Below are positions 215-44,424 of a stretch of DNA of 64,000 bases, one piece after another. The notes beneath the pieces were generated by a model that worked only from the letters and a program-made list of their open reading frames with translations, did not search any database and was not told the DNA's origin. Where the stretch lies: positions 1,488,001 to 1,552,000 of the forward strand of contig OZ218963.1 of NCBI GenBank assembly GCA_965112735.1. Direction: 5' to 3'. Position 1 is the first letter of the stretch, and the number at the start of each line of letters is the position of its first letter. Position numbers and translations under genes: made by a program. The stretch comes from Phaeosaccion multiseriatum. Taxonomy: Eukaryota > Protista > Ochrophyta, other classes.

Positions 215-3200
215 TGTGGTAGATTGTCCTGCCTGAGGGTTTCCGGTCACACATTCTGGGGTATAATAAGAATGTCGGTTTCCTAGGCACGCCCCGAGGG
301 GGTTCAACGGCTCTAGCGTTTCACCCTCCTCTTTGTGGGCACAAGCTTTGCATCAGCAAGTAGTAGAGATATATTATCAATACGGACACTGACGCCCCAC
401 CATAGGCGCAGCATATACTTAGTCCAAACCCCGCAACGTTTCTACTATCTTAGCTTAGCACAGAACTAGTTCTCGCTTTAGAAAAGCTTTGGAGAAGGAT
501 TTTCTCGGACCGATTGGAGGAGCGGCATCATGGCGGTTCAAGGCATCATCATGAGGGACCCAACCCATTGTCCGGAGATACGGACGCCTCTATGTGCGGA
601 AGTCGTCAGCGAGTTCTTACTGCAGTACGATCAGTCCGCGCTCAGGGATAGGGACAAGCCGCTGGATATCCCCAGCATGGTGCAGCTCATCGAACCAGCA
701 CATCGTTTTGGAATAGCCATCGCCAATAAAGTGTCGGAGGCTCAGCTAACGTCCAAGATGGTACGGGATTACTTGGAGAGGTGGTTGAAGAAGAATCGCA
801 GGGAGGACGTCAACGGCAACGCCACTCTTAATGAGATCATCAGGAGGACGGTAATCGAGTACGACCCAGACCCTCTTCAGTTCAAGCACAATCTCCAGTA
901 TATGTGCCAGCAATACCTTCGCGCGATTCACGAGTCGGCAGCAAGGAAGGAGTACCTGAACTTGAACCCCACCGATACGAATTACCTTGGTCCGAACGGA
1001 AAGCACGCTGCCAAAGGGATGCAGCGAGGCTTGCTTACCATCATCAAGAATTATGACCCATGCATGGAGAAGATGCTGGTGGACGCGTTCAAAGATGGAC
1101 AGAAGGACTGGGGAGAGCATCACGGGGAGTGGATGGAGAAATTCGTCAAACACTTATGCCAGTGGGCCACCATGAGAGCGGCAGCACGGCGTATCGGCGG
1201 TAAGGCCGAACATTTCCTTCCCGGACTCAAGGGTGACCAAGGGGCATCTGGAGGCGGCGGGGGGGGGGGGGTGGGCAAGGCAAAGGTGCAGGCGGCAAGC
1301 GCAAGTGGCAGCAGGAGCAGCAGCCAAAGCGTACGGGTGCAGAGACCTCCTCGAAGGAGACAGCGGCGGGCAAAGAGACAGCCAGCAACCCATTGAAGAA
1401 GGCCCGTACTCCGAAGTGCTGGGCCTGCGACAAGCCGCATCGGATTGACGACTGCCCTACAACCACTGCCGAAGACAAGAAACGCATCAAGGCAGAGAAA
1501 CAGAAGGCATGGGAGCAGAGGAAGGCTGAGGCGAAGAAACCGGGGGTGACGTCCGTCTCATCTTCTTCGGCTGCGGCAGGTGTTTCTTTGCCAGGGCCAG
1601 TTGCTATGGACCTCACGGGAGACCGCATGAGCGTGGTTCTCGTGAATGACACGACTCCGGAGGTGCGGATGTCGGCGCAAGCCCTGTTTGACAGCGGATG
1701 CGATGTGGGTATGGTCATGGGTGGTGACCTGGCTCGCACGTGGGTCGGAAAGGGTGGTGGCGTACTAGAGGCCTGTGAGCCTTCGGAGTGCGTCACTGCT
1801 GCTGGACCTGTGACTGCCAACGAAGTGTTGTGCGGCAGTCACCTTGAGATAGAGCTGAGTCATGGAAGCGTGAGTACAGCGCAGCTGGACAAGGAGTTCA
1901 GATCCATATTGGTTCTTGAGAGCTTGGGCAGCAGACTGATTCTGGGCCGGCCTTTGCATAAGGCACTGGGCTTGGAGTCTTTGACTGAGCAATTGCACAG
2001 AGTGCACGAGAAACGGTCGGAGGAGACCCTGCAGAGGGAGCGTGACGACGCTTCCCCTGCGACAGGGGCTGCCCCGACTAAGCAGCAGAGTGTTGAGAAG
2101 AGCGTGTGTTCTATGGGCGTTGAGACCATCCAAGACTTTGCGGATTTTGAGGCAAGCAACTTCCCCGTGCAAGTATTGGGGGTAGGAGCGCAGGAGGTTG
2201 CGGCCGAGAGCCCCCCTCCTGTCGCCAGTGCAGAGGCACCAGAGGTTAGCGCCATTGGCGGCCAACCGCTTAATAATAAAGACCGTGAAGAGTGTGAAGG
2301 TGTACCGGATACTATTCAAGGGCCATCAGAGGGAGTTCCCCCTTCTGAGGCACGCCGTAGAGAGGTGCTAGGTCCCATTGTGGACGAAGCAATCACTGAT
2401 CATGATTTCCCTGCGGAGCTGAGAGAGCCAATGATGGAAGCTCTCTTAGAGTTCGACGTGTGGCGGGAAGAGTTGCTCTTTAGCGACGGCCCCGCTAACG
2501 TAGAGCCAATGGAGGTGACGTTTACCAATAAGGTACCGAGCTCCCGTCTCCCCATAAGGCAACAAGGCGCAAAGGGTGCTTTTGTAAATGACTTTTGCAA
2601 CAAGTTGATAGACAAAGGCCTGGGTTATAGCAACCCGCAGAGCGCTCATGGCAGCCCGGCGTTTGCAGTGGGCAAACCCGGCAAGCCAGGCAAGTACCGT
2701 ATCGTCTGCGACTTTCGCGAAGTCAATGAAAAGGTACAGAAGGTCGATTTTGGGATGATGAACATTGAAGACGCCGTAGCCTCCATGTTGGGTTGCCTAT
2801 GGTTCATCGAGATAGATGGGGTTGACATGTATTGGCAATTCCCACTAGGCAAGTTGAGCCAAGTTGCTCACACCTATATATTCCCAAATGGCAAAGTGAC
2901 GCCAACTCGAGTACCCCAGGGGGCTAAGAACTCGGGCGCTTACGTCCAAGGCCAGATGACCCACCTCTTTCGCAAAGAGTTGTGCAAGACCCACGCCGTC
3001 TACATGGACAACGTAGCGTACTGGGCAAAGGTGGGAGAGGAGATGGTGAGTCTCACTCGACTGACGATGAAGCGCCTCCACAGCGCCAACATCAAGATAG
3101 GATTGAGCTCCTTCCGCTTCGGCAAAGAGCTTAAGTTCCTAGGCCGCGTGCACGACCGACGCGGCACACGACATGACCCCGCCAGAGTGCAGGGCCTGAC

Positions 3201-6010
3201 CAGTCTCGCGGCCCCAGAGACGGCTGGAGATTTGATGACTTTCCTCTGCAGCCTGCAGTGGTTTCATCGATACATCAAGGACTTCGCTAAGCTAGTGGGT
3301 CCTTTGAACGCGCTGTTGAACAAAGCCCTCGGGCAGGCTAACGCTAAGCCTCATCAGCACAAGCGCTCCAAGGCAGTGGCCAAGACGATTCCATTGGCTT
3401 CTGTGGGGTGGGACACAGAGCACGACGATGCTTTCTTCCAGATCAAGCGCGTTCTTGCACAGAACACGGTGCTGTCGCACCCAGACCCAACCAAACTGGC
3501 ACTGGTATTCCCAGATGCTAGTGACCTCTACTGGGGATGTATGATTACATACATAGACCTCAAAGAGCTGTGCCTTCCGGTACATGAGATGAACCACATC
3601 CCGGTGGCCTTCGGCTCAGGCGCCTTTGAAGGCGCAGAGCTGAGGCGTGCCACCATCGACAAGGAAGGAGACGCGACACTCCGAGGCTTGATCCAGAACG
3701 AGTACGCTTTGGTCGGGGCACAGAAAGTGCACATCTTTTGCGACCATCGCAACTTGGCGTTCATGATGAGCAACGACAGCAAGTACCCTGGCATGACTAA
3801 GCCTATGAGGGACAGGCTGCAGCGTCAGGCCGTGCGCCTTCAGAGCTTTGACTACGTCATTGTCCACTGCCCTGGTCATCTCCATGATTGGGCCGACCCC
3901 ATCAGCAGGCGGTACACGCACCCGGTGAGCCTCACCCCTAGTGTGCTCGCCTTGGGCAAGTTTGGACCTATGCAAGTGTTTGACACTATGTGTGAAGACT
4001 TCACTTGGCCCTCCACAACTGAGATTGCCAGTCTGCAGGCCGACGCTCTTCAGGAGCTCCAGCAGGCTAGCAAGGAGGTGGGAGAGAACGGGCGCCGCCT
4101 GCTCCTCTCATCAGTTGGCGACGACGGGTTGATTCGAGCGTGCCATCCGACGAGCAACCCCGCTGACAGCACCCGCATTTGGATTCCCTCGGTGGGAGCC
4201 AAGGCGGAAGACATGCACCTGAGGCTGTGTGTGACTGGCCATCAGGGTATGATGGGCCATCAGGGAGAGACAAACACCCTGAGTGCTCTTAAGGAGAAGT
4301 TCATCTGGCAGTCGCTAGACAAGGACGTGCGCAGCCTCGTTCAGAACTGTCTCCACTGCCTCACCAACGGCAAGGGCGAGAGAGTGCCTCGCCCCCTGCT
4401 AGCTCAATGGCACGCCACTGGACCCCAGCAGCTCATCTGGTTTGACTTCGTCAAGATTGGCGATGGAGTTATATGGGCAGAGTCCCCAGAAGGGTTCATG
4501 AAGCTTCAGGTCAAGCAAGTGCTGTGCATTTTTGATGACTTCTCGTCATTGTCAATGTATGAGCCATGCTTGGAAGCTACTGCACGAGTGTGTGCACGCG
4601 GTCTGTTGCGCTGGTTCGCACAGCATGGCGTAGTGCCCAGGTGGCAGAGTGACCGAGGCAGTCATTTTTTAAATGAGGTGATACGTGAGCTAAGTCAGCT
4701 CTTGCGGTGCAACCACCACTTTGTGGTAGCACACAACCCATATAGTCGAGGATTGGGCGAGCGTGGGGTACAGACACTGCAGAAGATCATGAGATCAATG
4801 ATGTCTGAGCTACGGCAACCGCCCGAGACATGGCCGCAGCTACTGCCAGTGATGGAGGCTGTTGAGAACAGCTCCAACAAGAGCAGTCGGTCTAGCATGT
4901 CTCCCATCCAGCTGCACAGCGGTCACGTACCACAGCGGCCCCTCGATACAATTTTGATCCACGACGCGGATCGACTGCAAAAGGTTCGGCTACTGCAGCT
5001 GACCCCGGCGCAGAGAGACACACTTGCGACACAACTCCATCAGAGGAAGGAGGGGCAGCGTGCCGAGGCGGCGCGCCACCTGACTACCCTCCGCGATCAC
5101 AAGCGCGATGGCATCAACCAGAGGTTGATGAGTGGCAGACGTGGTGCCGAGCATCGGCAGGACTTGGCCCGCGCTAAGCAGCTCAACAGCGAGACGCTGT
5201 TTCAGGTCGGAGTCTATGTACTCGTGGCAACAGTAGGGCCCACAAGCAAGATACTAGGCAAGTGGCATGGGCCCTGCCGAGTGCTTGAGGCCCTTGAGCA
5301 ACACGTGTACAAGGTGGAGGAGCTTGTGGGCAAGAAGCGTACCTATGAGGTCCACATCAGCCGGCTCCGCTACTACTGCGGTGCTCACGTTAACGTCACC
5401 ACCGACGTACTTCAACAGATTTCGTATAACACCCAAGACTTTGTGGTGGAGGCCTTTGAAGGCCTCGTTAAGCACGCAGATGATTCATGGCACGTCATTG
5501 TTAAGTGGCGTGGCTTTGACGCCCTCGAGAATAGCGAGGAGCCCATCGAGGCGCTGCACGAAGATACTCCACGTTTACTGGAGACCTACCTGCAGCACCA
5601 TCAGGACAAGCAGTTGATCAGCGCAGTCCGAGCCTATCTGCGCAAGACTACGACGCGATCGGCTACTAAGCCGCCGCGCTCCGCGCGCACACGAAAGCGG
5701 ACACAAACTAGATGATAGACACACTTACTTCCCAGTTGGCTCGAACTGTCGCTTGGGGGTAGTGTGGTAGATTGTCCTGCCTGAGGGTTTCCGGTCACAC
5801 ATTCTGGGGTATAATAAGAATGTCGGTTTCCTAGGCACGCCCCGAGGGGGTTCAACGGCTCTAGCGTTTCACCCTCCTCTTTGTGGGCACAAGCTTTGCA
5901 TCAGCAAGTAGTAGAGATATATTATCAATACGGACACTGACGCCCCACCATAGGCGCAGCATATACTTAGTCCAAACCCCGCAACGTTTCTACTATCTTA
6001 GCTTAGCACA
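215..6010 (+). mobile_element. Ty3/Gypsy chromovirus-type LTR retrotransposon, copy A1, essentially full length
   Basis: 248-bp TG..CA LTRs at 215-462 and 5763-6010, identical by eye. 4-bp TSD TCTG (211-214 / 6011-6014). PPT TGGGGGTAG before the 3' LTR. Domain order gag-PR-RT-RH-IN-chromo. Confidence 0.97.
530..5715 (+). CDS. gag-pol: Gag-Pol polyprotein of A1; probably one ORF broken by a 1-nt loss in the G run at ~1259-1271
   Basis: CCHC knuckle CWACDKPHRIDDC; protease ALFDSG; RT (IEIDGVDMYWQ, PQG, YMDN at 3001-3012); RNase H (FPDAS, CDHRNL); integrase HHCC + D,D,E (WFDF, QSDRGSHF, GLGER); GPY/F-like WHGPCRV; chromodomain (VIVKWRGFDALENSEEP). Copy A2 is continuous across the same Gly tract. 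Confidence 0.93.
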
Positions 6011-6525
6011 TCTGGCGTTGACGTTAGCTCCAACACCTGTTGTGCTGGCCTCCCCCCACTGGGAGCTTCTGTTCCTCCTCTCGAGGAAATGGTGACCGGC
6101 TCTGCGGCGGTATCTCTCCCCGCTTCCGTGGCCCCCGTCCCTACGATGTGATCCGTGACCGCTCGCATAAATCGCAAGAGAGGCATCACTCCCTCCGATT
6201 CTAACTTCTTGTCGAACTCGTTATTCTTCGGCTTGAACGTGAGTTCTAACAGCTGCTGTGCTGTACCCCCCCCCCTGCTGGGGGTCGCTACTCCTCCTGC
6301 TGAGGAAATAGTGACTGGTGTTGCGGCCGCTGCCGTGGGCACTCCTTGCTGTGGGATTTTGGCAAACTCTGCCGCTATCATCTCTTTCACCATTGCAGCC
6401 ATCTGCTGCAGTGCGTCTCCTTCTATCGCGGAACTCGCACTGACGGGCGCCGCTGCGTCCGCCTTTTCAACGCCTTCTTCTTCCGCGCCTGGCATGGCTA
6501 ACGAAAGGACTCCCTTCTCTCTCAC
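5998..6525 (-). pseudogene. Low-complexity, possibly gag-like ORF of an older element, interrupted by A1 and continuing in 1-214
   Basis: Internally repeated units (GG..QQ.LELT) run on both sides of the A1 insertion on the minus strand. No diagnostic catalytic motif. Confidence 0.35.
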
Positions 6526-8031: not shown

Positions 8032-9651
8032 GTGAGGGGCTCTCGGTCGGCCACAGCGGCACCCATGGCGGATTCTCCCACCAGTGTGGTCCCGAGTGGT
8101 GTTCTGACTCGCGCCCAGCGCGCTGCCGCTGAGGAAACGCGGGCTGCAGGCGAGGCAACAGCGACGGTCACGCCCCCATCTACGCCTCGTACGTCAGGAT
8201 TTCTCCAGCGTCTCTCTGGTGGTCTCACTGGGCTCCTCTCTCGGCAGTCGGCGGCCCTATCGGCGGCTGACGAGGCGGAGGTGGACGCTCAGGCTGAGCG
8301 GGATGTGGACCGGGTTATCCAGGCGGGCGATCTGCATGCTGCTGCCCTCGAGGCTGATGCCGCGGAGGAGGAGGAGGAGGAGAATTCGGAGGAGGAGGAG
8401 GAGGAGGAGGAGGCGGAGGAAGGGACGGCTTCGGCGGCAGCGGGGATGGCAGGGGGTACTGTGGGCGCTGTGGCAGACGGCAGGGCTGCGCCTGACGGGT
8501 TGGGGGTGCAGCAGCGGTTGCTAGCGGCTCAGATGTTGGGGCTGCAGCAGCAGATGGCCAGTTTGCATCTCCAAGCCTTGCCGACCGGTGGCCCTGTACT
8601 GGGGGGGGGGGTGCAGACGATTCGGAGCTTGCCCGCTAAACTCTCTCTCATGCCCCCGCTCACCTGGGGCCTGACGCACCGGGCCACGTTGGAGGTCTTC
8701 TCCAAGTGGATGCAGCAGCTGGAGTCCTGGGGCTACATGCGGCACGGGGAGGTGAAGGAAGAGCAGTGGGTGGAGGTGCAGCGTCTCATGACTGAGGGTT
8801 TCTCGGTGATGGAGCGGAGTAAGCTCGAGACAGCGGTGAGGGTGGAGAGGTCTGCACCTGACACTCCGCCTTTCTACCACGCGGCCGTGAGGGCGCTATT
8901 CCGGTTCTTTCACACGGTCGAGCTGCAGAACGCCGCGGTGGTACGGAGCCTGGTGACGTCCGAGTTGACGGGCTGCATGGAGTCCAATCTCAAGCTGGTG
9001 ACGGGGGTGTATCAGGTTAACGGCCTCAGGGCCTTGTTGGCGCAGGTCGGCGGCGATGCGCTGGCCGCCCTCGTGGATCAGGAGGGGATGGCGGTTCTGG
9101 AGGCTCAAGCCATGCATCGGCGCAGGGGCATCAGTCCGCAGTCGCTCACCAACGCCATCCTGCAGGAGGTGAACATGGCGGTGGCACACAAGCACTCCTG
9201 GGCGGCCTTGGGGACTATGTTGGAGCGGAAGTGCCCCCAGGAGTTCGAGCAGGTGCTCATGGACCACAGCCAGTTGTCGTGCGGGGGTGGCGGTCGTGGC
9301 GGTGGTGGTGGGGGCGGTGGGGGTGGCAGGCCTGGGAGGGAGAGCATGGACATCAACGCCGTGGATCTGCCGGCTTCTGCTGCCGCTACCACCTCCATGG
9401 CGGCATCGGGTGCCACCCCGCAGACTGTGGGGGCCGTGGTGCCGGCTCTGCACGCGCCGGCGGATCGCTGCTATGGGTGTGGTCAGACAGGGCACTTCCG
9501 TTTTGGGTGTAATGTGGTGCCCCCAACCCCGGGTCTGAAGCGCGCGTTGATGAAGCAATTGAAGCGGAAGCTGGCGGAGGACCCGGATTTCGACGCCATC
9601 TCCGAGATGGTTAGGGGCGTGCAGGCAGAGGCAGCGGGTGGTCTGTTGTGA
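8032..9651 (+). CDS. gag: Gag of element D
   Basis: CCHC knuckle CYGCGQTGHFRFGC near the C-terminus, preceded by an MDINAV spacer; located after the LTR/PBS. Confidence 0.85.
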   Translation: MRGSRSATAAPMADSPTSVVPSGVLTRAQRAAAEETRAAGEATATVTPPSTPRTSGFLQRLSGGLTGLLSRQSAALSAADEAEVDAQAERDVDRVIQAGDLHAAALEADAAEEEEEENSEEEEEEEEAEEGTASAAAGMAGGTVGAVADGRAAPDGLGVQQRLLAAQMLGLQQQMASLHLQALPTGGPVLGGGVQTIRSLPAKLSLMPPLTWGLTHRATLEVFSKWMQQLESWGYMRHGEVKEEQWVEVQRLMTEGFSVMERSKLETAVRVERSAPDTPPFYHAAVRALFRFFHTVELQNAAVVRSLVTSELTGCMESNLKLVTGVYQVNGLRALLAQVGGDALAALVDQEGMAVLEAQAMHRRRGISPQSLTNAILQEVNMAVAHKHSWAALGTMLERKCPQEFEQVLMDHSQLSCGGGGRGGGGGGGGGGRPGRESMDINAVDLPASAAATTSMAASGATPQTVGAVVPALHAPADRCYGCGQTGHFRFGCNVVPPTPGLKRALMKQLKRKLAEDPDFDAISEMVRGVQAEAAGGLL

Positions 9652-9688: not shown

Positions 9689-11645
9689 CCGGAGCCCTGG
9701 GGCGGGGGGGGGTGGTAACGGCAAGTAGTAGGGCAGTAGATACGGGAGTTAGAGAGGGTAACAAATCACATAATGTAACACCTCATCGAGCTTGTGTATC
9801 GTCTCCCTTCAGCTTGCTAGCCACACCTCCTCCCTCCCCGAGGGGCGAGATTCACACAGTTGACAGCGGTAGGCACGTCGACAGCGGTAGGGGGTGGGTT
9901 GACGGTGATGGGGTGGAGCAGAAGGCGGAGAAGGCGAAGGAGGAGGAGGAGGAGGCGGCGGTGTGGGGTGCGGTAGGGGGCATGCCGTTGTGGCGGCAGC
10001 GAGCTTGCCGTGAGCCACGCCTTCCGCACCATATGCTGCGTATAGGGCGGCGGAAGCAGCAAGCGCTCACTCTGCGCGCAACAGCTGACGCCGCACGGGC
10101 TCGGGCGGCCGCGTTCCTACGTTGCGCAGTGGGGCTCCCAGCCGCTGGGGGTGCAGTCGAGGGTGCGGCCGTTGGAGGGTTGAGGGCTGCCCCGCTCCCG
10201 TTGGTGGCGGTGGAGGCGGAGGCAGAGGCGGAGGAGGTGGAGGTGGAGGAGGAGGAGGAGGATGAGGAGGAGGAGGCGGAGGAGGAGGCGGAGGAGCAGC
10301 AGGAGGAGGCAGCTGACGCAGTAACGGCAGCGGCACCGGAGGGGCCGGAGGAGGAGGAGGAGGAGGAGGAGGAGGAGGAGGAGGAGGCGGAGGAGCAGCA
10401 GGAGGAGGCAGCTGACGCAGTAACGGCAGCGGCACCGGAGGGGCCGGAGGAGGAGGAGGAGGAGGAGGAGGAGGAGGAGGAGGCGGAGGAGCAGCAGGAG
10501 GAGGCAGCTGACGCAGTACCGGCAGCGGCACAGGAGGGACCGGAGGAGGAGGAGGAGGAGGAGGCGGAGGAGGAGGAGGAGGAGACGGAGGAGGAGGAGG
10601 AGGCAGCTGCCGCAGTGACGGCGGAGGCACCGGAGGGGCAGGAGAAGGAAGAGGCTCAGAAGGCGAAGGCAGAGGAGACGGAGGAGGAGGCGGAGGAGGA
10701 GGAGGAGGAGGAGGAGGAGGAGGAGGAGGCGGAGGAGAAGGAGGAGGCGGAGGAGGAGGAGAAGGAAGAGGCTCAGAAGGCGACGGAGGAGGAGAAACCA
10801 ATGTCGGAGGGGCTGGAGGCGGAGGAAGAGGCGAAGGAGGCTAAGGAGGAGCCGACGGAGACGGTGGCGGATTACGGGCACGAGGCTCGACAGACTGGTG
10901 CAGCAGCCGATGCAGCAATAGCAGCAGCGCTCTTTGGGGCTGAGCTGCAGGCAGAGGTTGAGGCCGCTGCACAGGGGCCGGCATGCGGGCTGGTGGGGGC
11001 GACGGCGGAGGCACAGCGGCGGGTCTGGAGGGCCCGACAGGTGGTGGTCATGCGGCGGTGGCGTGAAGGGCATGTGTTCCGCTGCCCTGCGTCTGCGGCT
11101 GCTGACGTGCCCCGGGGGGTCATGGCTCTACCGCTCGGGGTCCCTCCATGGGAACAGTCTCTCCGTGACCCCAGCCTGCTTCGGGAGTGGGTGTGGGCGG
11201 CGCAGGAGTGGGTGATCAGCGACGCACAGACAGCTACGCAAGCTGCACAGCGCTGGGCGGCAGAGTGCGCGGCCGCTCAAGCGCGGGTGCTGACGTGGGC
11301 GGCCGAAACGTTTGTGATTCCGCCGGCTGGCCGTCGCGTGCCTTCGGGGGTGGGGGTTGGGCCTTCAGCCGCGACGGCAGGGCGTTCTGCTCTGCTGGTC
11401 GACGACTGCGATGATTTCGACGCGCTGCTCGCGGAGCACGTCACCCTGCTGCCGGAGTGTAGTGGTGCTCTTCCTGCATTGTCTCCGACGGCGAAGGCGT
11501 GTCGAGCAGCGGCGCTCCTGGCACCAGCTGCCGAATCGGTGGAGAGGGAGTGCGTCAGTGGGTGCTCTCTGAGTGCGGAGCGGGAGCCCTGTGAGGTGTG
11601 CGTGCAGCGAGCGAGGGTGGAGATGGCGGCGCTCTCAGTTACTGA

Positions 11646-28770: not shown

Positions 28771-29437
28771 GGGAAAGGGTGGAGCGCCGCTTAAAAAAGA
28801 GTTTGTACAACGTTACGGATACGAGAAGTTGGGATGGCTGGCACTCCATCTCACCTTTTCTTCCCCTCCCTTCTTGTGTAATTCTAAACTTCGGTAAAGC
28901 TCTCGAGCCAACGAAGGTGCCCACAACGCTCTCTTCCCTTGCTCGCGCTCCTAAGTGCCCACAACTCGCTTCCCTTCCTCCCCCTCTCAATTCAGGTCCT
29001 AAAAAGTGTAGCTACGTATGTTACGCTTTGTATCTTTGCGCGACTACACGCTGATTGTGGCCGATGAAAGCCATACCCATTTTATATATGAATACATGGA
29101 CGCAATGGTGAGTAGCAAGACGTGTGGTAGATTGTCCTGCCTGAGGGTTTCCGGTCACACATTCTGGGGTATAATAAGAATGTCGGTTTCCTAGGCACGC
29201 CCCGAGGGGGATCAACGGCTCTGGCGTTTCACCCTCCTCTTCGTGGGCACAAGCTTTGCATCAGCAAGTAGTAGAGATATATTATCAATACGGACACTGA
29301 CGCCCCACCATAGGCGCAGCATATACTTAGTCCAAACCCCGCAACGTTTCTACTATCTTAGCTTAGCACAGAACTAGTTCTCGCTTTAGAAAAGCTTTGG
29401 AGAAGGATTTTCTCGGACCGATTGGAGGAGCGGCATC

Positions 29438-31968
29438 ATGGCGGTTCAAGGCATCATCATGAGGGACCCAACCCATTATCCGGAGATACGGACGCCTCTA
29501 TCTGCGGAAGTCGTCAGCGAGTTCTTACTGCAGTACGATCAGTCCGCGCTCAGGGATAGGGACAAGCCGCTGGATATCCCCAGCATGGTGCAGCTCATCG
29601 ACCCAGCCCATCGTTTTGGAATAGCCATCGCCAATCAAGTGTCGGAGGCTCAGCTCACGTCCAAGATGGTACGGGATTACTTGGAGAGGTGGTTGAAGAA
29701 GAATCGCAGGGAGGACGTCAACGGAAATGCCACTCTCAACGAGATAATCAGGAAGACGGTACTCGTGTATGATCCGGACCCTCTCCAATTCAAGCACAAT
29801 CTTCAGTACATGTGCCAGCAATACCTTCGCATGATCCACGAGTCAGCAGCAAGGAAGGAGTACCTGAACTTGAACCCCACCGATACGAATTTCCTTGGTC
29901 CGAACGGAAAGCACGCTGCCAAAGGGATGCAGCGAGGCTTACTCACCATCATCATGCATGGAGAAAATGCTGGTGGACGCGTTCAAAGATGGACAGAAGG
30001 ACTGGGGAGAGCATCACGGGGAGTGGATGGAGAAATTCGTCAGACACTTGTGCCAGTGGGCCACCATGAGAGCGGCAGCACGGCGTATCGGCGGTAAGGC
30101 CGAACATTTCCTTCCCGGACTCAAGGGTGACCAAGGGGCATCTGGAGGCGGCGGGGGAGGCGGTGGTGGGCAAGGCAAAGGTGCAGGCGGCAAGCGCAAG
30201 TGGCAGCAGGAGCAGCAGCCAAAGCGTACGGGTGCAGAGACCTCCTCGAAGGAGACAGCAGCGGGCAAAGAGACAGCCAGCAACCCATTGAAGAAGGCCC
30301 GTACTCCGAAGTGCTGGGCCTGCGACAAGCCGCATCGGATTGACGACTGCCCTACAACCACTGCCGAAGACAAGAAACGCATCAAGGCAGAGAAACAGAA
30401 GGCATGGGAGCAGAGGAAGGCTGAGGCGAAGAAACCGGGGGTTACGTCCGTCTCATCTTCGGCTGCGGCAGGTTTTTCTTTGCCAGGGCCAGTTGCTATG
30501 GACCTCACGGGAGACCGCATGAGCGTGGTTCTCGTGAATGACACGACTCCGGAGGTGCGGATGTCGGCGCAAGCCCTGTTTGACAGCGGATGCGATGTGG
30601 GTATGGTCATGGGTGGTGACCTGGCTCGCACGTGGGTCGGAAAGGGTGGTGGCGTACTAGAGGCCTGTGAGCCTTCGGAGTGCGTCACTGCTGCTGGACC
30701 TGTGACTGCCAACGAAGTGTTGTGCGGCAGTCACCTTGAGATAGAGCTGAGTCATGGAAGCGTGAGTACAGCGCAGCTGGACAAGGAGTTCAGATCCATG
30801 TTGGTTCTTGAGAGCTTGGGCAGCAGACTGATTCTGGGCCGGCCTTTGCATAAGGCACTGGGCTTGGAGTCTTTGACTGAGCAGTTGCACAGAGTGCACG
30901 AGAAACGGTCGGAGGAGACCCTGCAGAGGGAGCGTGACGACGCTTCCCCTGCGACAGGGGCTGCCCCGACTAAGCAGCAGAGTGTTGAGAAGAGCGTGTG
31001 TTCTATGGGCGTTGAGACCATCCAAGACTATGCTGATTTTGAGGCAAGCAACTTCCCCGTGCAAGTATTGGGGGTAGGAGCGCAGGAGGTTGCGGCCGAG
31101 AGCCCCCCTCCTGTCGCCAGTGCAGAGGCACCAGAGGTTAGCGCCATTGGCGGCCAACCGCTTAATAGTAAAGACCGTGAAGAGTGTGAAGGTGTACCGG
31201 ATACTATTCAAGGGCCATCAGAGGGAGTTCCCCCTTCTGAGGCACGCCGTAGAGAGGTGCTAGGTCCCATTGTGGACAAAGCAATCACTGATCATGATTT
31301 CCCTGCGGAGCTGAGAGAGCCAATGATGGAAGCTCTCTTAGAGTTCGACGTGTGGCGGGAAGAGTTGCTCTTTAGCGACGGCCCCGCTAACGTAGAGCCA
31401 ATGGAGGTGACGTTTACCAATAAGGTACCGAGCTCCCGTCTCCCCATAAGGCAACAAGGCGCAAAGGGTGCTTTTGTAAATGACTTTTGCAACAAGTTGA
31501 TAGACAAAGGCCTGGGTTATAGCAACCCGCAGAGCGCTCATGGCAGCCCGGCGTTTGCAGTGGGCAAACCCGGCAAGCCAGGCAAGTACCGTATCGTCTG
31601 CGACTTTCGCGAAGTCAATGAAAAGGTACAGAAGGTCGATTTTGGGATGATGAACATTGAAGACGCCGTAGCCTCCATGTTGGGTTGCCTATGGTTCATC
31701 GAGATAGATGGGGTTGACATGTATTGGCAATTCCCACTAGGCAAGTTGAGCCAAGTTGCTCACACCTATATATTCCCAAATGGCAAAGTGACGCCAACTC
31801 GAGTACCCCAGGGGGCTAAGAACTCGGGCACTTACGTCCAAGGCCAGATGACCCACCTCTTTCGCAAAGAGTTGTGCAAGACCCACGCCGTCTACATTGA
31901 CAACGTAGCGTACTGGGCAAAGGTGGGAGAGGAGATGGTGAGTCTCACTCGACTGACGATGAAGCGCC
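29438..31968 (+). pseudogene. gag-pol: A2 gag-PR-RT 5' half
   Basis: Colinear with A1 530-3076; YIDN at 31893-31904. Confidence 0.9.
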
Positions 31969-32202
31969 TGTCGAAACTACCGACAGCTAGCCTCAAAGCC
32001 AAGCTAGAGCAGAGCAGAAGCTGAAGCAAGCACCCGGAAGCCAGCCCACACGCAGGCTGCGCTTCCTTTCTTTTATTACTGATTTACCGTCTAGTTGGCC
32101 CGTTTTCCGGCCGTTACACTACTGATTGGGTCCCCAAGGGACCCCAACTAGGCCACTTCTAACATCCCCCTCACTACACCCCCGCCTCTTCCGCCAGCTC
32201 CC

Positions 32203-35200
32203 TCAGAAGCCGAGATGCGAGCGATAGAATTGCGTCTCGTGCGCCAGCCCGCTGCCCCACTTCTCATGTTGCCGCAGACGGATCGTGCTTTCCCGTTTAG
32301 ACCTATGCCCTCTTTTGACATTCACTCCTGGATCAAGGGCAGTGTGCGGGAGGGCGTTCTCGAACGCCTCTATGGCCTTGGCGTGTCCCCGCTCCAGTAA
32401 CCACTCAGCCCATTCCCAGGTCTGGAAAGTGCCGCCGTCCGACACCGCCCACCGCACGTTATACTCTCGCCGCAGTGGCAGCCCCGTGGCTTTGCGCCAG
32501 CGGAACTTCACAATCCTCGCCAGCGTGGGCACTTTCCCTTCACTCACCTCGTCCAGCTCTAAGCTACGCTGCTCCTGCATTGCGCTGGTAGCCCACTGAG
32601 GAGAGCACCAACGGATATGATACCTGGCGAATCCTTCCGGGAGACCGAAGGGTCGCTCGCTCACCCCATCGATGAACGGCTTCGTCAAGTCTCTGTGGTA
32701 CGCCCGTTGCAGCTGCTCCACACCATTGCCGCGCACCCGTTTCATAGACAGATACACTGCGCTGCGCTGCATGACCTGGTAGTGCTCTTCACTCACCCGC
32801 CCATGCTGAGCACAGTAGGCCCCCAGAGCTGGCCAAGGCAAGACTGTATAAGGACCATCCCACGAGTGCTGCAGAGCCTTGAGTTGCGCTGACGGGGGCC
32901 CTTCGAGTTCTTCCCCTTCTTGCTGGGCGGCGGCACCAGGACGATACAACATCACCTTGGTTCCGGGTCGCAGGGGCGTCGGCCAACGGCGTGAGGCGTT
33001 CTTCAGCTGCAATCTCCCGTGGTAGTCGCAGCGCCTCCCATTGACCACCGCCGCAGCCGCAGCCAGACGTGCCCGCAGTTCGTGGACCCATGCCGAGGCA
33101 GACGAAAACGACCCGTCCTCCACTAGCGCCGGAAGCATCGCCTGTAGAGGCACCGGGGGGTGCCGACCGAACAAGGCGTAGAATGGCGCCATCCCCGTGC
33201 TCTCCTGCGAGCGGCAGTTGTACGCATAGGTGAGCCCGGCGACGTAATCTGGCCACTGCTGCATCTGTGACTCCACGGTCGTCGCCAACATGTCCTTGAT
33301 CGTGGCCATGAAGCGCTCCACCTGCCCATTGGCCTGTTGGTGCATCGGCGTCGTGAACACTTGCGACGCCGATAGAACTCGCATCACATCGCCCATGAGC
33401 GCACTGGTGAACTGCGAGCCTTGATCACTCACCAGCACTCGGGGCACACCCAGGGTGGTGACGACATGCCGCACGAAGGCCCGAGCAATACCTTCCGCCG
33501 TATAGTCCTGTGCCCTCAAAGGCACCACCACTGTCCACTTCGTGAACCAATCCTGAAACACCAAGAGGTACTCCTCACCGCCCATGCCCATAGGAAAGGG
33601 GCCAGCCACATCAGCGCCCATGACCGCCCAAGGTCCATCCACCTTGGAAATGGACGACAGCGGCACAGGCTTTGGCTGCCGGCGAGGAGTCTTGCGTGTC
33701 TGGCACGCCAGACAGGAGCGGGCCCAATACAGCGCATGTGCATTCATCTTCTCCCACCATACGCGCTCTTGCAGCGCGTCTAGCATACGTCCCGGGCCTT
33801 GGTGCCCACCTGCGATGGCATCGGTGTGGGCGGCATGCAGCAAGGCTGGCCGCATCTCCTTGGGCACACATACTTGTAGCCGAGTGTGCCGCACCCGCCA
33901 CCGAAAGCCCCCAGGAGCCCACTTACGCATCAAGAGCCCGTCCTCATCCACAAAGAACTCACCCCCACCTGCATCCACCACGCCGCCGGTGGGCCCAGCC
34001 TGAACACGGCGACGGAGTGCTTCCAGCTCCGCATCAGCCCGCTGCGCACGCACCCACCACGCGGCCTCGACATGCAGACTGCCACCCAAAGCTCCAGCCG
34101 CTCGTCTGTGCGCCGCGGCAGCAGGCACCGTGCCTGGTAGAGACCACCCAAACTGTCGCTCTGCCTCTCGTCGATGCCCATCAAGCTCGCGCTGCAAGGT
34201 GGACTCCTGCTCCACCGGCTCCTTGGAAACTGAATCCACTGCCTCCTCAGCTTCATTATCCACTGCATCCGCAGCTTCATCACCTGCATCCCCCGCTTCT
34301 TCCGTGACCAGTAGATCTGCCGTACCAGGCTCCGACGGCGACTCCGCAGCAGGCGGCTCCCCAGGGTGGGTGATGCGGCCCTCCTCCGTAACAAGCTCCT
34401 CCGAGGGCAGACGAGACGCATCCTCCTCAAGCTCGGCCTCCCATGCAGCCCACGCATGAGCGGCCGCGGCACCCGTTTGCTGAGCCTCCGCTGGTGTGCA
34501 CATCGAGAAGTAGTCACGCGACACCTGACGGACTTGCTTCCATGGCAACTCGATCATGGTATCTAGATGACTGGCCAACGCGCCCACCACCTTCCGCTGG
34601 CGCTTATATGTCCGCGTGAACCGCTCCACCATCTGCATCATTGTCTCCCACGAGCACTGCAGTTTGAATTGCAGTTTGGCCAGGTCGAATACCTCCAACG
34701 TCTTGGAGTGGACACCAAAGATGTAGAGCGGTGACACGTGGTCGCGATCGCCCCAATAACCAACCGCGGCCTGCATGAACCTGCCGACTTGCATCTCCTC
34801 CTGCTCCGCAGGGGTGTGAGCAGGGCTCATCGCGCTAAGCTCCACCCCCGGGCCACCATGGACGAACGGCACACACTCCGCCATGCGAGGCCAGAGGCGG
34901 AGGAGCGCCGCAGCGTCAGCAAACGCGTACTCCCGTTGAGCGGCGGACAGCGGCCGCTTCGTCCAATCGGTGGCCCGCTCCTCCTTGCTAAGGTGTTGCT
35001 CCAAGAACATGCTGACAAGGTCCTGGAGTCCGATGAACTGAGTATGTTCGGGGCACACGCGCTTAAAGAGGTCACTGGTGTCCACCAAGTTGACGATGTG
35101 CTGGACATGCTCCGCGAGCTCCGGCCATCGGCCCAGGGCACGTTGGTCGTGACTCCAGTGGTGAGCCAGCTTCACAATCGAGGGTTCGGTCCACAGGTCC

Positions 35201-38200
35201 CGCAACACTTGCGCCAGTACCATCATACCCCCCGCCTTCTGAAGCGCGTCTAGATCAATCAAGAGCCCATAGTCACGCGCCACATCCGGCAGCGGCCCAA
35301 CCTGCACGGCCAATTGCAGCAGCGACGCGCGCCGTCGGTGACGCGCCCACTCCGAATCCATAGCGACCACTTTGGCTGAGCGCAACTGAGTCGATAGAGC
35401 CTGCACGTGCCTCGGCGTAGACACGTACGTGCACCTCGCTGCGGAAATGTGACTCACAAATGGCGGCATCTGACCCAGCTGCCAGGCCTCTATCACAGCC
35501 TTCTTCACACCCAGCTGGGGTGCTCGCGTAGGCTGCCATCCACATTGCTGAAGACGCTGTGTCCAAGCACGCCGAGCAGTACCCCTGCGTGACTGCGTCG
35601 CCGCCAAGTCCACCTCTGCAGTCTGCCAGGCTTGTAGGGCCTCCGCTCCGCTCTGCTGCTGGTGGTGGCACCGTTGCTGCTGTTGCTGGGCCGTCACGGC
35701 AGGCACAGGAATAGGAAGGCGTGTGTCGGCTTCGCCCTGCAGCTGTTGCGCCACTGCGAGAAAGCGAAGCAGTGCGCCCTCCGTGGGCTCCTCCCAATGA
35801 AGGCTGCACTCGTCCCCTACCATCTCCACCAGGTTCAACTGCACCCCCATCGAAGCACACCAGGTGTGCAAGGGCGACGGCCACTCGCACGCAACCATGG
35901 CCAAGTCTACCCCCGCATGCGTCTCCCACTCCTGCACCGGAAGCGCGTTGCGAGAGAGGCAGTCAGGCACCACCATTTGCTTCCCGGGACGATGCACAAA
36001 CTGCAAGTGGTGCGTAGAGAGCCGCTCGTACCATCTGAACAGCTTGGAATTGGTATCCTTGTGCCCAGCCAACCACAACAAGGGCTGATGGTCCGTCACC
36101 ACTGTGGTGGGGTAGTGGCAGATGTACATGGCCAGTTTGCGCACACACCACACCACTGCCAGCAGCTCCAGCTCCGTGCTGCTCAGTCGCGCCTCCGTCT
36201 CCGTGGTAGCCCGACTGATGAACGTCACCACACGCTCCTCCCCGGTCGCATCTTTCTGAGAGAGCACTCCTGCTAACCCTTCCGTCGAGGCATCGGTACT
36301 CAGGGTGAAAGTCGTCGCTGGCCCGTACTCCGGAAAAGCCAGTGCAGGGGAAGACAACAAGTCGGCAACGAGTCCATCCCAAGCTGCATCGTGCGAGGCA
36401 TTCCAGGCGGTGCTCACGTCGACGCCCTTACGCAGCAGCCCATTGAGGGGCCGCACTTTGCGCGCAAACTCCGGAATGAAACGGCGAAAGTAGCTGAGCA
36501 TGCCAATGAAACGCCGCACCTGCTTAACTCGATTGACGCCGCCATCCTTCGCAAGCAACCTCAACGGCTTGACCAGCTCTTGCACCGCCGCATGCTTGGC
36601 CGGGTCTGTGCGCACCCCATTCTGATCCAGCAAATGCCCGCAGAACCGCACCTCCGGTGCACCCAATACAGCCTTACTCGGCTCCAACTTGAGCTTGTGC
36701 TCCACCAACCGCGCAAGCACAGCATCCAAATGCTCCAGATGCTGCTCAACCGTAGCCGAAAACACAGCAATATCGTCCACAAAGCATGCCACATGCTCCT
36801 GAAGCCCCTTGAGCACCTTGTTCATAAGCCGCACAAAGACTGCAGGCGCATTCTTCGCGCCCTGCGGCATCACTCGCCAAGCGTAAGTTCCACTGTGGCA
36901 CACAAAGGTGGATATGTCCTCTTCCGCTGCTGATGCCATCGGCACATTGAAGTAGCCCGACATGATGTCCATCACCGAGAACACCTTGGAGCCATGCATC
37001 TCTGCCAGCAGATCATCAATCACCGGCATCGCAGGGGCCTCCGTGCGACACGCATCATTCAGCTGAGACAAGTCACACGTCATACGTACCACAGGCGTCC
37101 CATCCTCATGACACTTGGTTTTGCCAGCTGCGTCCGTCTTCAAGACCGCCATCAGCGGAGTAGCCCAGCTGGAAGTGCTGGGGCGAATGATGGCAGCCGC
37201 GAGAAGCTTGTCAATCTCAATCTCAATCCCCCGCCGCAAATGTGGAGGATACCGTCGAGCGGAGCTCCGAATGGGCTGCTGATTCGCATCCTTCAGTCCC
37301 CACTCAAAGAAGAGAGTATCCGTCCGACCGTAGTCACCAGGCCTCTGACAGAATGCTTGCGACCGAGCGCGAAGGATCGCCACCAGTCCCCAGCGTTGCA
37401 CCTCCGTCCAGGCACCGTCGCCAATCGTGATAGCGTGCAGGGGCGACGGTAGCTCCCTGAGCCAGAACTGAGCCCTCTCCGTAGTGAGCTTGGCACGGCG
37501 CCGCTGCTCCACCACAAGCTCTCCTGCATCCCACGACTCCACTCCCCCACCAAGACAGCGACTCTCCTGCAGCACCGTTCGCAATTGGATGAGGAGCAGC
37601 AGCGCATTGGTCATATCCTGCTCCACCTTCTCCTGCTGCTGTAATGGGCGACTAGACCACAACGACAAGAGCTGTTGGGCCCATGCGGCCACAGCAACGT
37701 CCCCAACGCCGCTCAGACCCGTGCCAGCGGCTTGGTGTACATGGGGGCGCAGGAGCAGTAGCGCGGTCACAGCCCCTTCCTCTGCCGCAACCAAGCACTC
37801 GCGCAGACGTCCATACACTCGCTCTGACAGGTGAGGGTACCACTCCTTGATCAACTGCACTCCTGCCATCAGAGTCCCACCGGACGTGTCACTCTGGCTA
37901 CCGAGTCGCAAGGCACCATCCGCATCCAGTACCCACCCATCACCGCGTAGGTCAGTCAATGATGTGCCCACCGCCGCCGACGATGAACCTGCCTCGGACC
38001 GTAGTGGCGGTTCCTCCGACGCCACTGACGATGCCGCCCCTGGCGCAGGCCTGCTGGTGGAATCATCAGCCCCCGCCACGTGGTGGACCTGCAGCTGGCC
38101 TGTACGAGGCGGTCGGGGCTCCTGCAACTGTGTCTGACGGCGTCGCGCTACCGCCGCCGGAGCCACCTGCTGCTGTACCGCATTGGACCGCTGAACCTGC

Positions 38201-41200
38201 TGAGCTGCCGACGAATCCGCTCGCTTAAAGAGCTCTTCCCGCTGGGCCTTGTGCCGTCGCTGCAATGCCCACTGGCGTTGCTGCCGTGCCTGCTGCTGTG
38301 CCGCTTGTAACCGCTTGGCCTGCTGCGTTGCCAACCAGGCTGCTGTCTCCTCCTTCGAGTCCACTCGTGGTGTGTCAGCTCGTCTGGCCGGCACTCGCAC
38401 TGTCCCCCCCCAGGAGGGCGCCAAGGGCACGCGACGCTCCCGCGGCACCTGTCGTTGCCCCAAGTCGCTCCCCCAAGCGAGACGAAGCCCTCGGTGATGC
38501 CAGGCGCAGGAGCCGTCAGCGCACAGCTCCCGTCGCAGCGGCAAAACTTGTCGTCGCACTTGCTCATGGCGCTCCAACACTGCTTGCCGATGAACCTGGT
38601 CCCACAGCACAGGAGACTCCACAAGCATTGATGCCACTCTCCGACGTTGCCGCTGCAACCGCCCAGCACCCACTCGACTCTGACGACACTGACTCCCCTT
38701 CTTGCCGCTGCGCTGCAAATGCTGAAACCGGGCCTTCACTGCCGGCTGAGGCACCAGAGTCGATGGCACCCCCACCTCAGTCCGTGGGTGCGTCAGGGCC
38801 TGCACCTGCACAGCTTGCAGCGGAAGCGCCGTAGCCCCCAGCTCAGCCTCCTCTGGTACCACCGAGCAGCGAACTACAGGCCCCTGCGGTGGGCACCAGA
38901 CCGGCTCAGCTCCTGCTTCAGCTTCAGCCGGCTGCTGCGACGCCTCCTCCTCCACCACAGACTCAACCGCCTCCCGCGCCTTGGACCATGGCAGCCTGCG
39001 CTTCACCACACGCCTCACCATCCCGCCAAGAGCACCAAGCCAGGAGGAGGGGGCCGCTGCAGTCTCCGGCATGGTATCTGAAGAAGCCGGCTCAGCGAGC
39101 ATGAGCGCGGCCACCTCAGCGCTCGCCTCCGAGTCGAGCAAGCAAGAAGCGGTGCCGATGACCTGCCCAGGAACGACCACAATGACCTGATTGTGGTGAT
39201 TCTGCACTGTGATTCGGTAACTCTGCCCCCCAGCATACACACCATCTTTGTGCGCCACTAGAACCTGCTCGTGCTCCAGCCACCATAGAACGTCCGCCTC
39301 TGCCGCCAAGTGTCCGTGAGCGCCCAGCTCCACCACCGCCTGGACACCCTCAACGATACCCGTAAGCTCGAGGAGAAGGGACCCCGTCTGTCCAGGTCCC
39401 AAGCTCAAAGCCTCCACAGCACGTACCCCCCCAACAGCAGCGTTGCCGTCCACCACTGCCAGCACTTGCACAGCCAAGGCATCGGACGGACGAGCATCCG
39501 ACGTGGCCTCCTCCGAAGGAGTCGGAAGCACGTAGAGCTGCTTCGCACGATGATCGACGACTGCCCCTACTTGGGTGAAGAAATCCTGCCCCAAGAAGAT
39601 GGGCCGCGCCAAGTGGTCCACCACATGAAAGGGTAGCACCGGCTGGCACGTCGGCGTGAGTCCCACCTGAAGCCAAACAAGCCCTCTGGACATAGTCTTG
39701 GCACGATTGTCAGCGTAAGACACCTGCACCCCCTTCTGCGTGGCGAGCTCTGACCGCTCCACCGTGCCATCCGCCACCAGTTGATTGAAGCAGGCTGTCG
39801 AGATGCAGCCCGCTCCTGTGCACCCACTGTCCATCAAGGCTGTAAAGGCGCTCTTCTCCACGGCGTCGGCGGCACTGGCATCCCGTGGAGCGGTAGCAGC
39901 CAAGCAATGCCGAGCGTCACTGACCTTCACTGGCGAGCGCACCGTAACCTCGATCGTGTGGCCCCGCCCTGCTGGGACTGCCGTACGACCCGTGGCAGCC
40001 ACCGCTTCGGCAATCTCAGCTCTCCGCACTGCTGTCTGCAAGGCGGCCACCCCCCCGGAGCGTCCTCCATCCGCACACGGTAGAGAGCCAAGGCAGCGCG
40101 TTGCACACACCCCTCACACATATCACACTCACTGTCAACAGCCGACGCACAGGCACAAGCTCCCGGACTGGGGGGCTCCTTGAGCAGAGCGACTCCCGCG
40201 CCAGGCTCCAAGGCTACTGCATGACAAGCACGTACAAACGGATCAAGGGCAAGCGTGTGCAGCCCCGCCTCCTCCGTCAACACCGCCGTGAAAGCAGCCT
40301 CCTGCTGATGCTGCTGTGCTGCTGCTGTCGCACGAGCACGCTGCCTCCGCTGCTTCCTCCGCACCCGCCGTCGAAGAGCTACTGCGCGCCTCGCTGCATC
40401 CTGCTGCTCCTGTGCCGCCTGCTCGTCACCCTTGCGCAGCGCTGCCTTCGCCTGCTGGGCACGCCGTCTCAACCACTTTGCTGCCACCCTCTGCTCAGTC
40501 CTGCTCCGCCCCTCCGCCGGAGGCACCGCTGGAGACGTCAGCGGCAGGGTCCGAAGGCTCTGCTCCTGCTGCTGAAGCTGAACCTCCTCCTGCTGCTGAA
40601 GCTGAACCTGCCACGCCCACTGTTCATGTTCCCCCGTGGGAGTGAATGGCGGAAGAGATGCTGCCCCGAGCGGTAAGGCCCGCACGAGGCCCATGGCCTT
40701 GGCCTGGCGAGGCGTCACCAGGGAGCACAGCTGCTGAGGCTGAAGCTCATCGCTTGACGGTGGGCTGGCTTTTGCAACCTGGACGGCAGCCTCGACAGCA
40801 TGACCCTGCTGCTGCTCCAATTGCTCCTGCTGCCCCCCCGCCACCTGCGGCTGCTGCTGCAGCAGCTGCTGCTGCTGTCCCAGCCGCTGTTGCCGCTCCT
40901 TCGCCGCACGCAGTGCGCGCTGTTCCGGGAAGGCACACGCACGCACCCGCTCCAAACCCCTTGCATCCATCCAGACAGACTCGTGTTGCGCAACGGTTGC
41001 CGCCTCGCACTCAACCTCCCCCACTGCCGACGGTGGCACCTGCTGCTCCGGACACTCACCCGCAACGACTGCATCCTCCTGGCGCAGAGGCAGCGGCAGC
41101 GCGACGTCAGGTCCGCTCGACGGCTCGACGGCAGAGCCGGGCTGCGGTGCTTCGACTAAGCACACGGAGCGTACCACTGGACACGGCTGCTGCTGCTGCT

Positions 41201-41572
41201 GCTGCTGCTGCTCCGGCGGCGGCAGCTGCTCGACTGCGGAAGCCGCTGGCGCAGCCTCCTGGTGCGCGCCCTCCACGACTACCTCTACTGCACGCTGCGC
41301 CTGCTGCTGTACCGCCGTCATCGCCGTGTGCTCACCAGCAACGACTGCATCCGGGCCGTCAGTGCCCCGCGACTGCTCGACCACAGAGCGTACCACAGGA
41401 CCCGGCTGCTGCGCTAGCTGCCGCTCCGGCTGCTGGCGCTGCGGCTGCGGCAGCTGCCGCTCCGACGCTGGCAGCTGCTCGACCGCGGACGGCGCAGGCA
41501 CAGCCTCTCTGTGCGCACCCTCCACGACTGCCTCTACGACACGGCGCTGCTGCTGCTGCTGCTGCTGCTGCA

Positions 41573-41604
<32 letters not shown>

Positions 41605-41894
41605 TGTTGCCGTTGTAGCCGAGCACGTTTGAGTCTGTCGCCACACCACATGTCACTCCGATAAACTCTGATGGCAGGTGACTCCTGCTCTACACGACTA
41701 GCCTGACCGCTCCTACGCTGAGCGTCGGCATGGGGCAAAGGTGGGTCTGACAAACAAGATAGGTGCGAAGTACATTCATTATCTTCTACACTGCTCTTGC
41801 CCGCCCTCCCCCCCTGTTCCCCCACGCCGACGCTATCCTCACGCGCTGCGGTCGTGGGCCCCAGGGCTGCTGGCCAAGCAGCCCCGGGGCACCG
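32203..41894 (-). CDS. pol: Pol of B: Q-rich spacer, Cys motif, protease, dUTPase-like, helical domain, RT, RNase H, DEDDy exonuclease, unknown domain, integrase, chromodomain
   Basis: ORFs 39927-41825 and 32203-40110 join if the G7 run at ~40050-40056 is G8; homolog D is continuous there. Motifs: ALMDSG; FVDD; STDAS; MDSEW/HHWSHD/YAFAD; HTDAIAGGH..CLAC; GADVAG, VSDQGSQF, NGQVER; WDGPY; EYNVRW..TWEW. Confidence 0.93.
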
Positions 41895-42195
41895 TCAGCC
41901 TTCGAACTTGAACCCGTCCTGCGCCGCCAGAGTGCCCGCCACCATTGCTGCTACGGCTTCAGACATGTCGGACTCCTGGTGCTGCGCTCTGACCGCCTGC
42001 CGCCGCTGCACGCGACTCACAATGCCGAGCAGCTCCTCACGCGTAGCGGGGATGGCGTTGCATTCTATCCATCCATGGCCGGCGCGGCGACAAGTCATGC
42101 AGTTAAATGGGGCATTGCCGTTGCCACGCTGCTTCACCGAGCCGTGGAACAGCAAGGGCCGCTGCTGGGTGGGCGTGAGCCGCGGCTGCTGCGCC

Positions 42196-42230
<35 letters not shown>

Positions 42231-44103: not shown

Positions 44104-44424
44104 CCTAGCAAGCCCAAAGCTGTCTACGGCCTAAAGCTGGGCAGCTGGAAGCAAAGCTCAAGCCAACACAATAAATCAGCCTCAAAGCTGGATCTCAGAC
44201 CTGTGTCTTTCGGGTCTTCCGGGTTGTCGAAACTACCGACAGCTAGCCTCAAAGCCAAGCTAGAGCAGAGCAGAAGCTGAAGCAAGCACCCGGAAGCCAG
44301 CCCACACGCAGGCTGCGCTTCCTTTCTTTTATTACTGATTTACCGTCTAGTTGGCCCGTTTTCCGGCCGTTACACTACTGATTGGGTCCCCAAGGGACCC
44401 CAACTAGGCCACATCTAACACGCC

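Follow-up and report, generated by a model that had tools for sequence, protein, structure and literature searches.

The window analysed here, 64,000 nucleotides of contig OZ218963.1 from the ochrophyte Phaeosaccion multiseriatum (assembly GCA_965112735.1, positions 1,488,001 to 1,552,000 of the forward strand), holds near its start a long terminal repeat (LTR) retrotransposon, A1, whose reverse transcriptase (RT) carries asparagine in place of the second aspartate of motif C. A three-aspartate triad is the textbook arrangement for reverse transcriptases. A1 and its relatives probably form an autonomous Ty3/gypsy clade that is replicated by its own Asp-Asn RT, the asparagine having been kept by selection down to an RT identity of 37%. 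A preliminary description, made from the letters of the window, had proposed a lineage that transposes with Asn at this position; the genome census, the LTRs, the selection estimates and a single origin in the RT tree all agree with that proposal.

Motif C in the window and across the genome

In the pol frame of A1, positions 3001-3012 of the forward strand read TAC ATG GAC AAC, that is Y-M-D-N, with the Asn codon at 3010-3012. A second copy, A2, has YIDN at 31893-31904, and a more distant relative, copy C, has YMDN at 50137-50148, here with the Asn codon AAT; the letters of the window confirm all three readings given in the preliminary description. The methionine is private to A1, as the rest of the A family reads isoleucine. 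Contigs of four public runs have ATT-GAC-AAC around 3004-3012, and no change at 3010-3012 appears among the differences listed for them.

The residue was placed by alignment to RTs of known structure. When searched with phmmer against the sequences of solved structures (PDB), the A1 segment 'avymdnvay' paired with 'svyvddiyf' of foamy-virus RT, and in a 70-sequence profile D140 and N141 fell on 'VYLDDILIF' of Ty3. Because of these two alignments we assign the Asn to the position of the second Asp of RT motif C. The best match of the RT profile in the PDB was Ty3 RT (4ol8, E 2.9e-52). Consistent with this, the AlphaFold2 model of the A1 RT is predicted to adopt the canonical RT fold (predicted local distance difference test score, pLDDT, 94.9), with template modelling (TM) scores of 0.73-0.80 against the RTs of cauliflower mosaic virus (CaMV), foamy virus, Moloney murine leukaemia virus and Ty3. 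The parts of the A1 RT referred to below are:

2674-3144, + strand: RT domain (Pfam RVT_1, pol residues 428-584, E 6.7e-14)
2809-2832, + strand: motif A, E-I-D-G-V-D-M-Y, with the catalytic Asp at 2815-2817 and the Glu at -2 at 2809-2811
3001-3012, + strand: motif C, YMDN, with Asn (3010-3012) in place of the second Asp
3106-3111, + strand: motif D, Ser-Ser, where relatives have a conserved Lys (aligning with K220 of human immunodeficiency virus type 1, HIV-1)

A census of the motif covered the 67-Mb genome in its 22 contigs. Families are listed by their RT identity to A1:

A family, 95-100%: 18 places; 16 YIDN, 1 YMDN, 1 YIHN
A65 family, 65%: 8 places; 8/8 YIDN
A58 family, about 60%: 1 place, degraded; YIDI
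W family, 37%: 10 places; 9 WIDN, 1 WIDS
Next family out, 33%: 5 places; WLDD
More distant gypsy families, lower identity: uncounted; YIDD, FVDD

Tabulated in this way, Asn proved nearly universal in A, A65 and W; it is carried by 17 of the 18 A copies, the remaining one being the YIHN copy. An Asp codon at the second motif C position was found in no copy of the Asn families in the genome, although Asp is only one transition away from the Asn codon. The codon itself varies, being AAC in A and W, and AAT in A65, in copy C, in one A copy and in P0001, a public protein described below. The preliminary description had allowed that YxDD copies might make up most of the family or mobilise its members as helpers; no YxDD copy was found to share these LTRs or to belong to these families.

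A HMMER search of 1.84 billion representative proteins returned 24,795 matches, and the motif was read in the best 150. Among these best 150, 189 RT domains were DD and three were DN, one of the three lying within the Asn clade. Because DD is so dominant in this set (189 versus 3), the Asn of the clade goes beyond chance. The match within the clade, P0001, is an intact 1727-residue polyprotein with YIDN from another public run; since its best match in the present genome reaches only 88%, it comes from another genome. The other two, P0129 and P0143, are isolated and unrelated gypsy-type proteins with WLDN. Motifs A and D are ordinary in one of them; in the other, motif A +4 is Ser and the motif D Lys is shifted by one residue towards the N terminus. 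Both are either occasional dead copies or members of additional natural lineages with Asn. When the A and W RTs were used for word-index searches, all relatives found were DD, one of them from an oomycete; the matches to the W-family RT were WLDD and WIDD.

In a maximum-likelihood RT tree built without the motif A and motif C columns, and with the stop of copy C entered as X, A1, A65, P0001, L026, both W subfamilies and copy C formed one clade (98 ultrafast bootstrap, 97 Shimodaira-Hasegawa-like approximate likelihood ratio test), nested among DD lineages with gypsy-type polyproteins. The grouping persists with the motif columns dropped and therefore points to one old change, which indicates that Asp-to-Asn probably arose once, deep in the clade. 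The preliminary description had counted two divergent families with YxDN. Their divergence stands, whereas the number was too low: there are at least five Asn families, all within this clade.

Natural YxDN as such is already known from nematode Bel/Pao elements. YVDN occurs in Caenorhabditis elegans Cer7-Cer12, whose activity was said to 'remain to be determined' (PMC554778, citing Bowen & McDonald 1999), and it is a distinguishing feature of the nematode belpaoviruses including the Ancylostoma Atlas virus (PMC9094657 and its Fig. S1 legend), whose LTRs are 100% identical and whose polyprotein is intact (PMC9094657). Like the elements described here, Cer7-12 and Atlas are natural, apparently active LTR retroelements with Y-x-D-N in motif C. 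In contrast, they belong to the Bel/Pao superfamily (Belpaoviridae) and live in animal hosts, whereas the present elements are Ty3/gypsy by domains and RT similarity. The Pao peptidase (PF05380) had no match in this genome, and control genomes were equally silent. Every Pfam and PDB affinity points to the gypsy/retroviral type. The Asn found here is of an origin independent of nematode Bel/Pao. A text search of the literature found no equivalent motif in gypsy-type elements and returned the nematode Bel/Pao reports alone. The present elements add a further superfamily and a protist host to the known range of natural YxDN.

In the L polymerases of non-segmented negative-strand RNA viruses, Asn naturally takes the place of the second acidic residue of motif C. 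These GDN(Q) enzymes share the right-hand palm but are RNA-dependent RNA polymerases of unrelated sequence, and they serve as an analogy only.

Recent insertions and selection on the reverse transcriptase

LTRs, target-site duplications and reading frames were compared for eight full elements. The LTRs are 100% identical in A1, in L052 of the A65 family and in L053 and L054 of the W family; in A1 the identity extends over 249 bp (214-462 and 5762-6010, a shared flanking G included). The reading frames of L052, L053 and L054 run without interruption for 1726, 1882 and 1872 residues, respectively, and 4-bp target duplications flank A1, A2, L051, L052 and L053. The corresponding features of A1 are:

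211-214, + strand: left copy of the target-site duplication TCTG, matching the 4 nt at 6011-6014
215-6010, + strand: whole element A1, from LTR to LTR
215-462, + strand: 5' LTR, TG...CA, 100% identical to the 3' LTR
5763-6010, + strand: 3' LTR, from the LTR comparison
6011-6014, + strand: right copy of the duplication TCTG, pairing with 211-214

These data show that insertions of the Asn families are recent and were made by an integrase. Recent mobility, previously proposed for one family on the strength of identical LTRs, holds in three active families, with 4-bp duplications beside the identical LTRs.

Estimates of the ratio of nonsynonymous to synonymous substitution rates (dN/dS) were obtained at two depths. 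Between A sublineages 4-6% apart the ratio is 0.11-0.16 for pol and 0.07-0.16 for the RT alone. The two W subfamilies share 68% identity overall and 90% in the RT, with a dN/dS of 0.027 at saturated dS. For A versus A65, dS is saturated, so that dN/dS is not computable. The other catalytic residues are kept across the clade, namely the Asp of motif A, the first Asp of motif C, the Lys and Arg of the fingers and the Gln of motif B. As judged from these substitution ratios, the RT of the Asn families is shown to be under strong purifying selection.

Linked active-site changes and the competing explanations

The Asn is accompanied by further substitutions around the active site. Two comparison sets were used, a joint alignment with the 65 DD relatives closest to the clade and a group of 183 DD domains that were aligned to the query:

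Motif A, position -2 relative to the catalytic Asp: Glu/Asp in 0/183 DD domains; in the Asn clade Glu in all intact families and Ala in the relic C
Motif A, +3: in DD relatives Ser or Lys for the most part; in the Asn clade Asp or Asn
Motif A, +4: Gly/Ala in 176/183 (96%) of DD domains; Met, Phe, Cys or Tyr in the Asn clade
Motif C, Asn +2: Leu, Ile or Val in DD relatives; Ala, Thr or Phe in the Asn clade
Motif D Lys: kept by essentially all DD relatives; Ser-Ser in A and A65, Ser-Gly in W, Lys one residue earlier in P0001 and L026

The RTs of Ty3, CaMV and foamy virus keep the motif D Lys as well; three of the four intact Asn families have Ser or Gly at its position. We take motif A +3 to +5 to correspond to HIV-1 D113, A114 and Y115, lining the sugar/triphosphate pocket for the incoming deoxynucleoside triphosphate (dNTP). 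The motif D Lys occupies position 174 of the profile, and it is at this position, equal to residue 220, that the local alignments to HIV-1 RT stop. HIV-1 K220 has been proposed to act as general acid towards the leaving pyrophosphate, and D186 is often without contact to metal A (PMC11618517). The earlier suggestion of compensatory changes or altered pyrophosphate handling thereby gains candidates, namely the motif A Glu at -2, the loss of Gly at +4 and the loss of the motif D Lys, each of which might contribute. Such linked changes in motifs A, C and D are new here.

The same residue has been exchanged in two yeast elements, one of them of the same superfamily. Ty3 D214N retains polymerase activity with lower processivity, and the exchange is lethal for transposition (PMC5371799). 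In Ty1 D211N kpol falls 223-fold, manganese is preferred, pyrophosphate handling is defective and transposition is lost, with RNase H suppressors restoring only 5-10% of it (PMC2148107); the Ty1 background given in the preliminary description was correct. As both yeast mutants still polymerise, an auxiliary or non-ligand role of the second Asp is indicated (PMC5371799, PMC2148107). In contrast to the yeast mutants, which lose transposition, the elements described here proliferate and carry the further active-site changes listed above.

We propose that two invariant residues of the Asn clade, the Asp of motif A and the first Asp of motif C, would hold the two metals. The second motif C position, having an auxiliary role, would tolerate Asn much as it does in Ty3 D214N and Ty1 D211N. 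The linked changes would here offset what the exchange costs those mutants (slow turnover, poor processivity, altered handling of pyrophosphate and loss of transposition). Glu at -2, Asp or Asn at +3, the bulky residue at +4, the smaller or otherwise changed residue at Asn +2 and the motif D Ser or Gly may together re-tune the dNTP and pyrophosphate side of the site.

Three other explanations have to be set against this proposal. The Asn could reflect chance decay, an artefact of the assembly or G-to-A hypermutation in dead copies; one transition is enough to turn GAY into AAY, and copy C is indeed badly degraded. Nevertheless, Asn occurs at no fewer than 36 places, in three families whose frames are intact and whose LTRs are identical. 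It recurs in contigs of independent public runs, its codon varies synonymously, and purifying selection is strong. The genome census rules this explanation out, and the probability that we leave to it is negligible. Alternatively, the Asn elements could be polymerase-dead and depend for their copying on a YxDD RT supplied in trans by some other family, such as the WLDD family, with their own RT domain kept for a non-catalytic role, for example as an RNase H scaffold or dimer partner. The failure of Ty1 D211N and Ty3 D214N to transpose (PMC2148107, PMC5371799), the absence of the motif D Lys as well, and the presence of active WLDD, YIDD and FVDD gypsy families in the same genome would fit. Since the Asn families contain no DD copy, a helper from within the same family is ruled out, and none with these LTRs was found either. 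Three families would each need outside help, from a donor whose RT is only about 33% identical. The RT is moreover the most conserved part of the W polyprotein (dN/dS 0.027), and its other catalytic residues (motif A Asp, first motif C Asp, finger Lys and Arg, motif B Gln) are invariant. Trans-mobilisation by a YxDD helper is improbable, because the elements combine identical LTRs, 4-bp duplications and intact frames with a low RT dN/dS.

The remaining explanation accepts an active Asn RT and treats the motif A and motif D changes as neutral lineage markers, the second Asp being dispensable in this background. All changes lie on one branch, HIV-1 D186 is often away from the metal (PMC11618517), Ty3 D214N retains activity (PMC5371799), and motifs A and D are largely ordinary in the two singleton WLDN proteins. 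On the other hand, the changed positions rank among the most conserved across the 183 relatives (96% with Gly/Ala, about 100% with Lys, none with Glu or Asp at -2), they sit at the dNTP/pyrophosphate site, and engineered single mutants lose transposition. We consider neutrality rather unlikely on balance.

Several points weigh against replication by the clade's own Asn RT with linked compensation. A1 itself carries a split gag/pol frame, and copy C, being a frameshifted relic, is weak evidence when taken alone. The same substitution abolishes transposition in Ty1 and Ty3, and the activity of the present enzymes is deduced from their evolution. The equivalence of the motif D Lys with HIV-1 K220 would follow from where profile alignments end and not from superposed coordinates. 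Loss of this Lys is not uniform, as P0001 and L026 have a Lys one residue earlier. Finally, the co-changes and the Asn apparently share one origin and are phylogenetically confounded, so they cannot show compensation. Because all changes map to one branch, compensation is offered as a hypothesis and not as a result.

Going further, the clade could embody an alternative catalytic solution, an RT without the third carboxylate and mostly without the motif D general-acid Lys, possibly with the new Glu and a reshaped pocket, perhaps with another metal preference and maybe coupled to the palindromic priming site described below. We regard this as possible but advance it tentatively.

In Ty1 and Ty3 the Asp-to-Asn exchange separates polymerisation in vitro, which is kept, from transposition in vivo, which is lost. 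The Asn Ty3/gypsy enzymes evidently complete the full cycle, and the same genome holds a sister family with Asp-Asp. Exchanging a few residues between these natural enzymes would make it possible to test directly what the second Asp and the motif D Lys contribute to metal A binding, processivity and pyrophosphate handling. If the nematode Bel/Pao YVDN elements share the linked changes, compensation would be convergent and rule-like.

Structure of the elements and neighbouring features

The coding part of A1 and the stretch that follows its 5' LTR contain the following features:

463-495, + strand: palindrome-rich stretch with GAACTAGTTC and AAAGCTTT, directly after the 5' LTR at the primer-binding-site position
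530-1396, + strand: gag frame, an open frame of 288 residues
1258-1270, + strand: G-run, 1 nt shorter in A1 in an alignment with A2 and L006-L010
1393-5715, + strand: pol frame of 1440 residues with protease (DSG), RT, RNase H, integrase and a chromodomain-like tail
3409-3849, + strand: RNase H domain (Pfam RT_RNaseH and RT_RNaseH_2, pol residues 673-819)
4243-4740, + strand: integrase, zinc-binding domain and core (Pfam Integrase_H2C2, residues 950-992; rve, residues 1040-1116, below the cut-off)

The shortened G-run splits gag and pol of A1 into two overlapping frames, whereas sister A copies have a single gag-pol frame of 1730-1784 residues. The extra G is present in the contigs of public runs, and the shortened run could be either a real mutation or a homopolymer error of the assembly. 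The preliminary description had credited A1 with identical LTRs and otherwise intact motifs; the first part is borne out over the 249 bp, but the split frame means that A1 is not wholly intact. Its gag frame had no Pfam match. The DSG protease motif lies upstream of the RT in pol, and the order protease, RT, RNase H, integrase recurs in the A65 and W families. The putative chromodomain of A1 scored 20.6 bits against Pfam Chromo, below the cut-off of 25.1 (E 4e-4), and A65 and W gave no match at E 0.001.

By their LTRs, domain order and RT grouping the A elements are Ty3/gypsy (Metaviridae), departing from the F/Y-x-D-D of motif C. They resemble the chromodomain Ty3/gypsy elements in their TG...CA LTRs, 4-bp duplication, order of protease, RT, RNase H and integrase, H2C2 motif and, in A1, a putative C-terminal chromo-like tail. 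In contrast to these elements, they have YxDN, lack the motif D Lys, have an altered motif A and carry a palindrome at the position expected for the tRNA primer-binding site.

In every Asn family a short perfect palindrome follows the 5' LTR directly and takes the place expected of a tRNA primer-binding site. The palindrome GAACTAGTTC occurs in A and A65, and AAAAGCTTTT and TAAAGCTTTA occur in W. The palindromes beside the 5' LTR of other elements lie at:

L051, 2867-2890
L053, 3636-3660
L054, 3866-3890

No palindrome was found after the 5' LTR of the WLDD sister family (L055). Comparing the LTR with the post-LTR site for self-priming gave only a weak inverted repeat (71%), and the window contains no tRNA gene. 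The palindromic site may reflect unusual priming tied to the altered RT.

The two other copies in the window are laid out as follows:

29122-31969, + strand: left part of A2, with YIDN at 31893-31904, 97.7% identical to A1
44421-47355, + strand: right part of A2, which has its own target duplication, GACG
48471-52283 (approximate), + strand: copy C, a degraded relative in the same clade, with YMDN at 50137-50148 and many frameshifts and stops

A2 is interrupted 65 nt past motif C by a nested 12.45-kb LTR element (31970-44420) with a 5-bp duplication. This nested element lies on the minus strand and has 196-bp LTRs that are 99% identical and an RT of the FVDD type. The RNase H part of copy C is missing, and its only other genomic copy has a frameshift exactly at the motif.

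Two long degenerate repeat arrays, whose periods are multiples of 3 between 9 and 15 nt, occupy 8336-8464 and 10173-10750 of the window, in very GC-rich (65%), G-skewed surroundings. They probably encode a low-complexity protein repeat.

Elsewhere in the genome, several Asn-family copies are less than 10 kb from a contig end (C3:5534, C3:9731, C9:8790, C10:8715 and C11:5750, with C5:15553 also listed); the locus L057 covers one such end (contig 3, 1-10000). Asn-family copies also cluster on contig 14 at 2.3-2.75 Mb. The clustering at contig ends and on contig 14 suggests subtelomeric or centromere-like islands of transposable elements.

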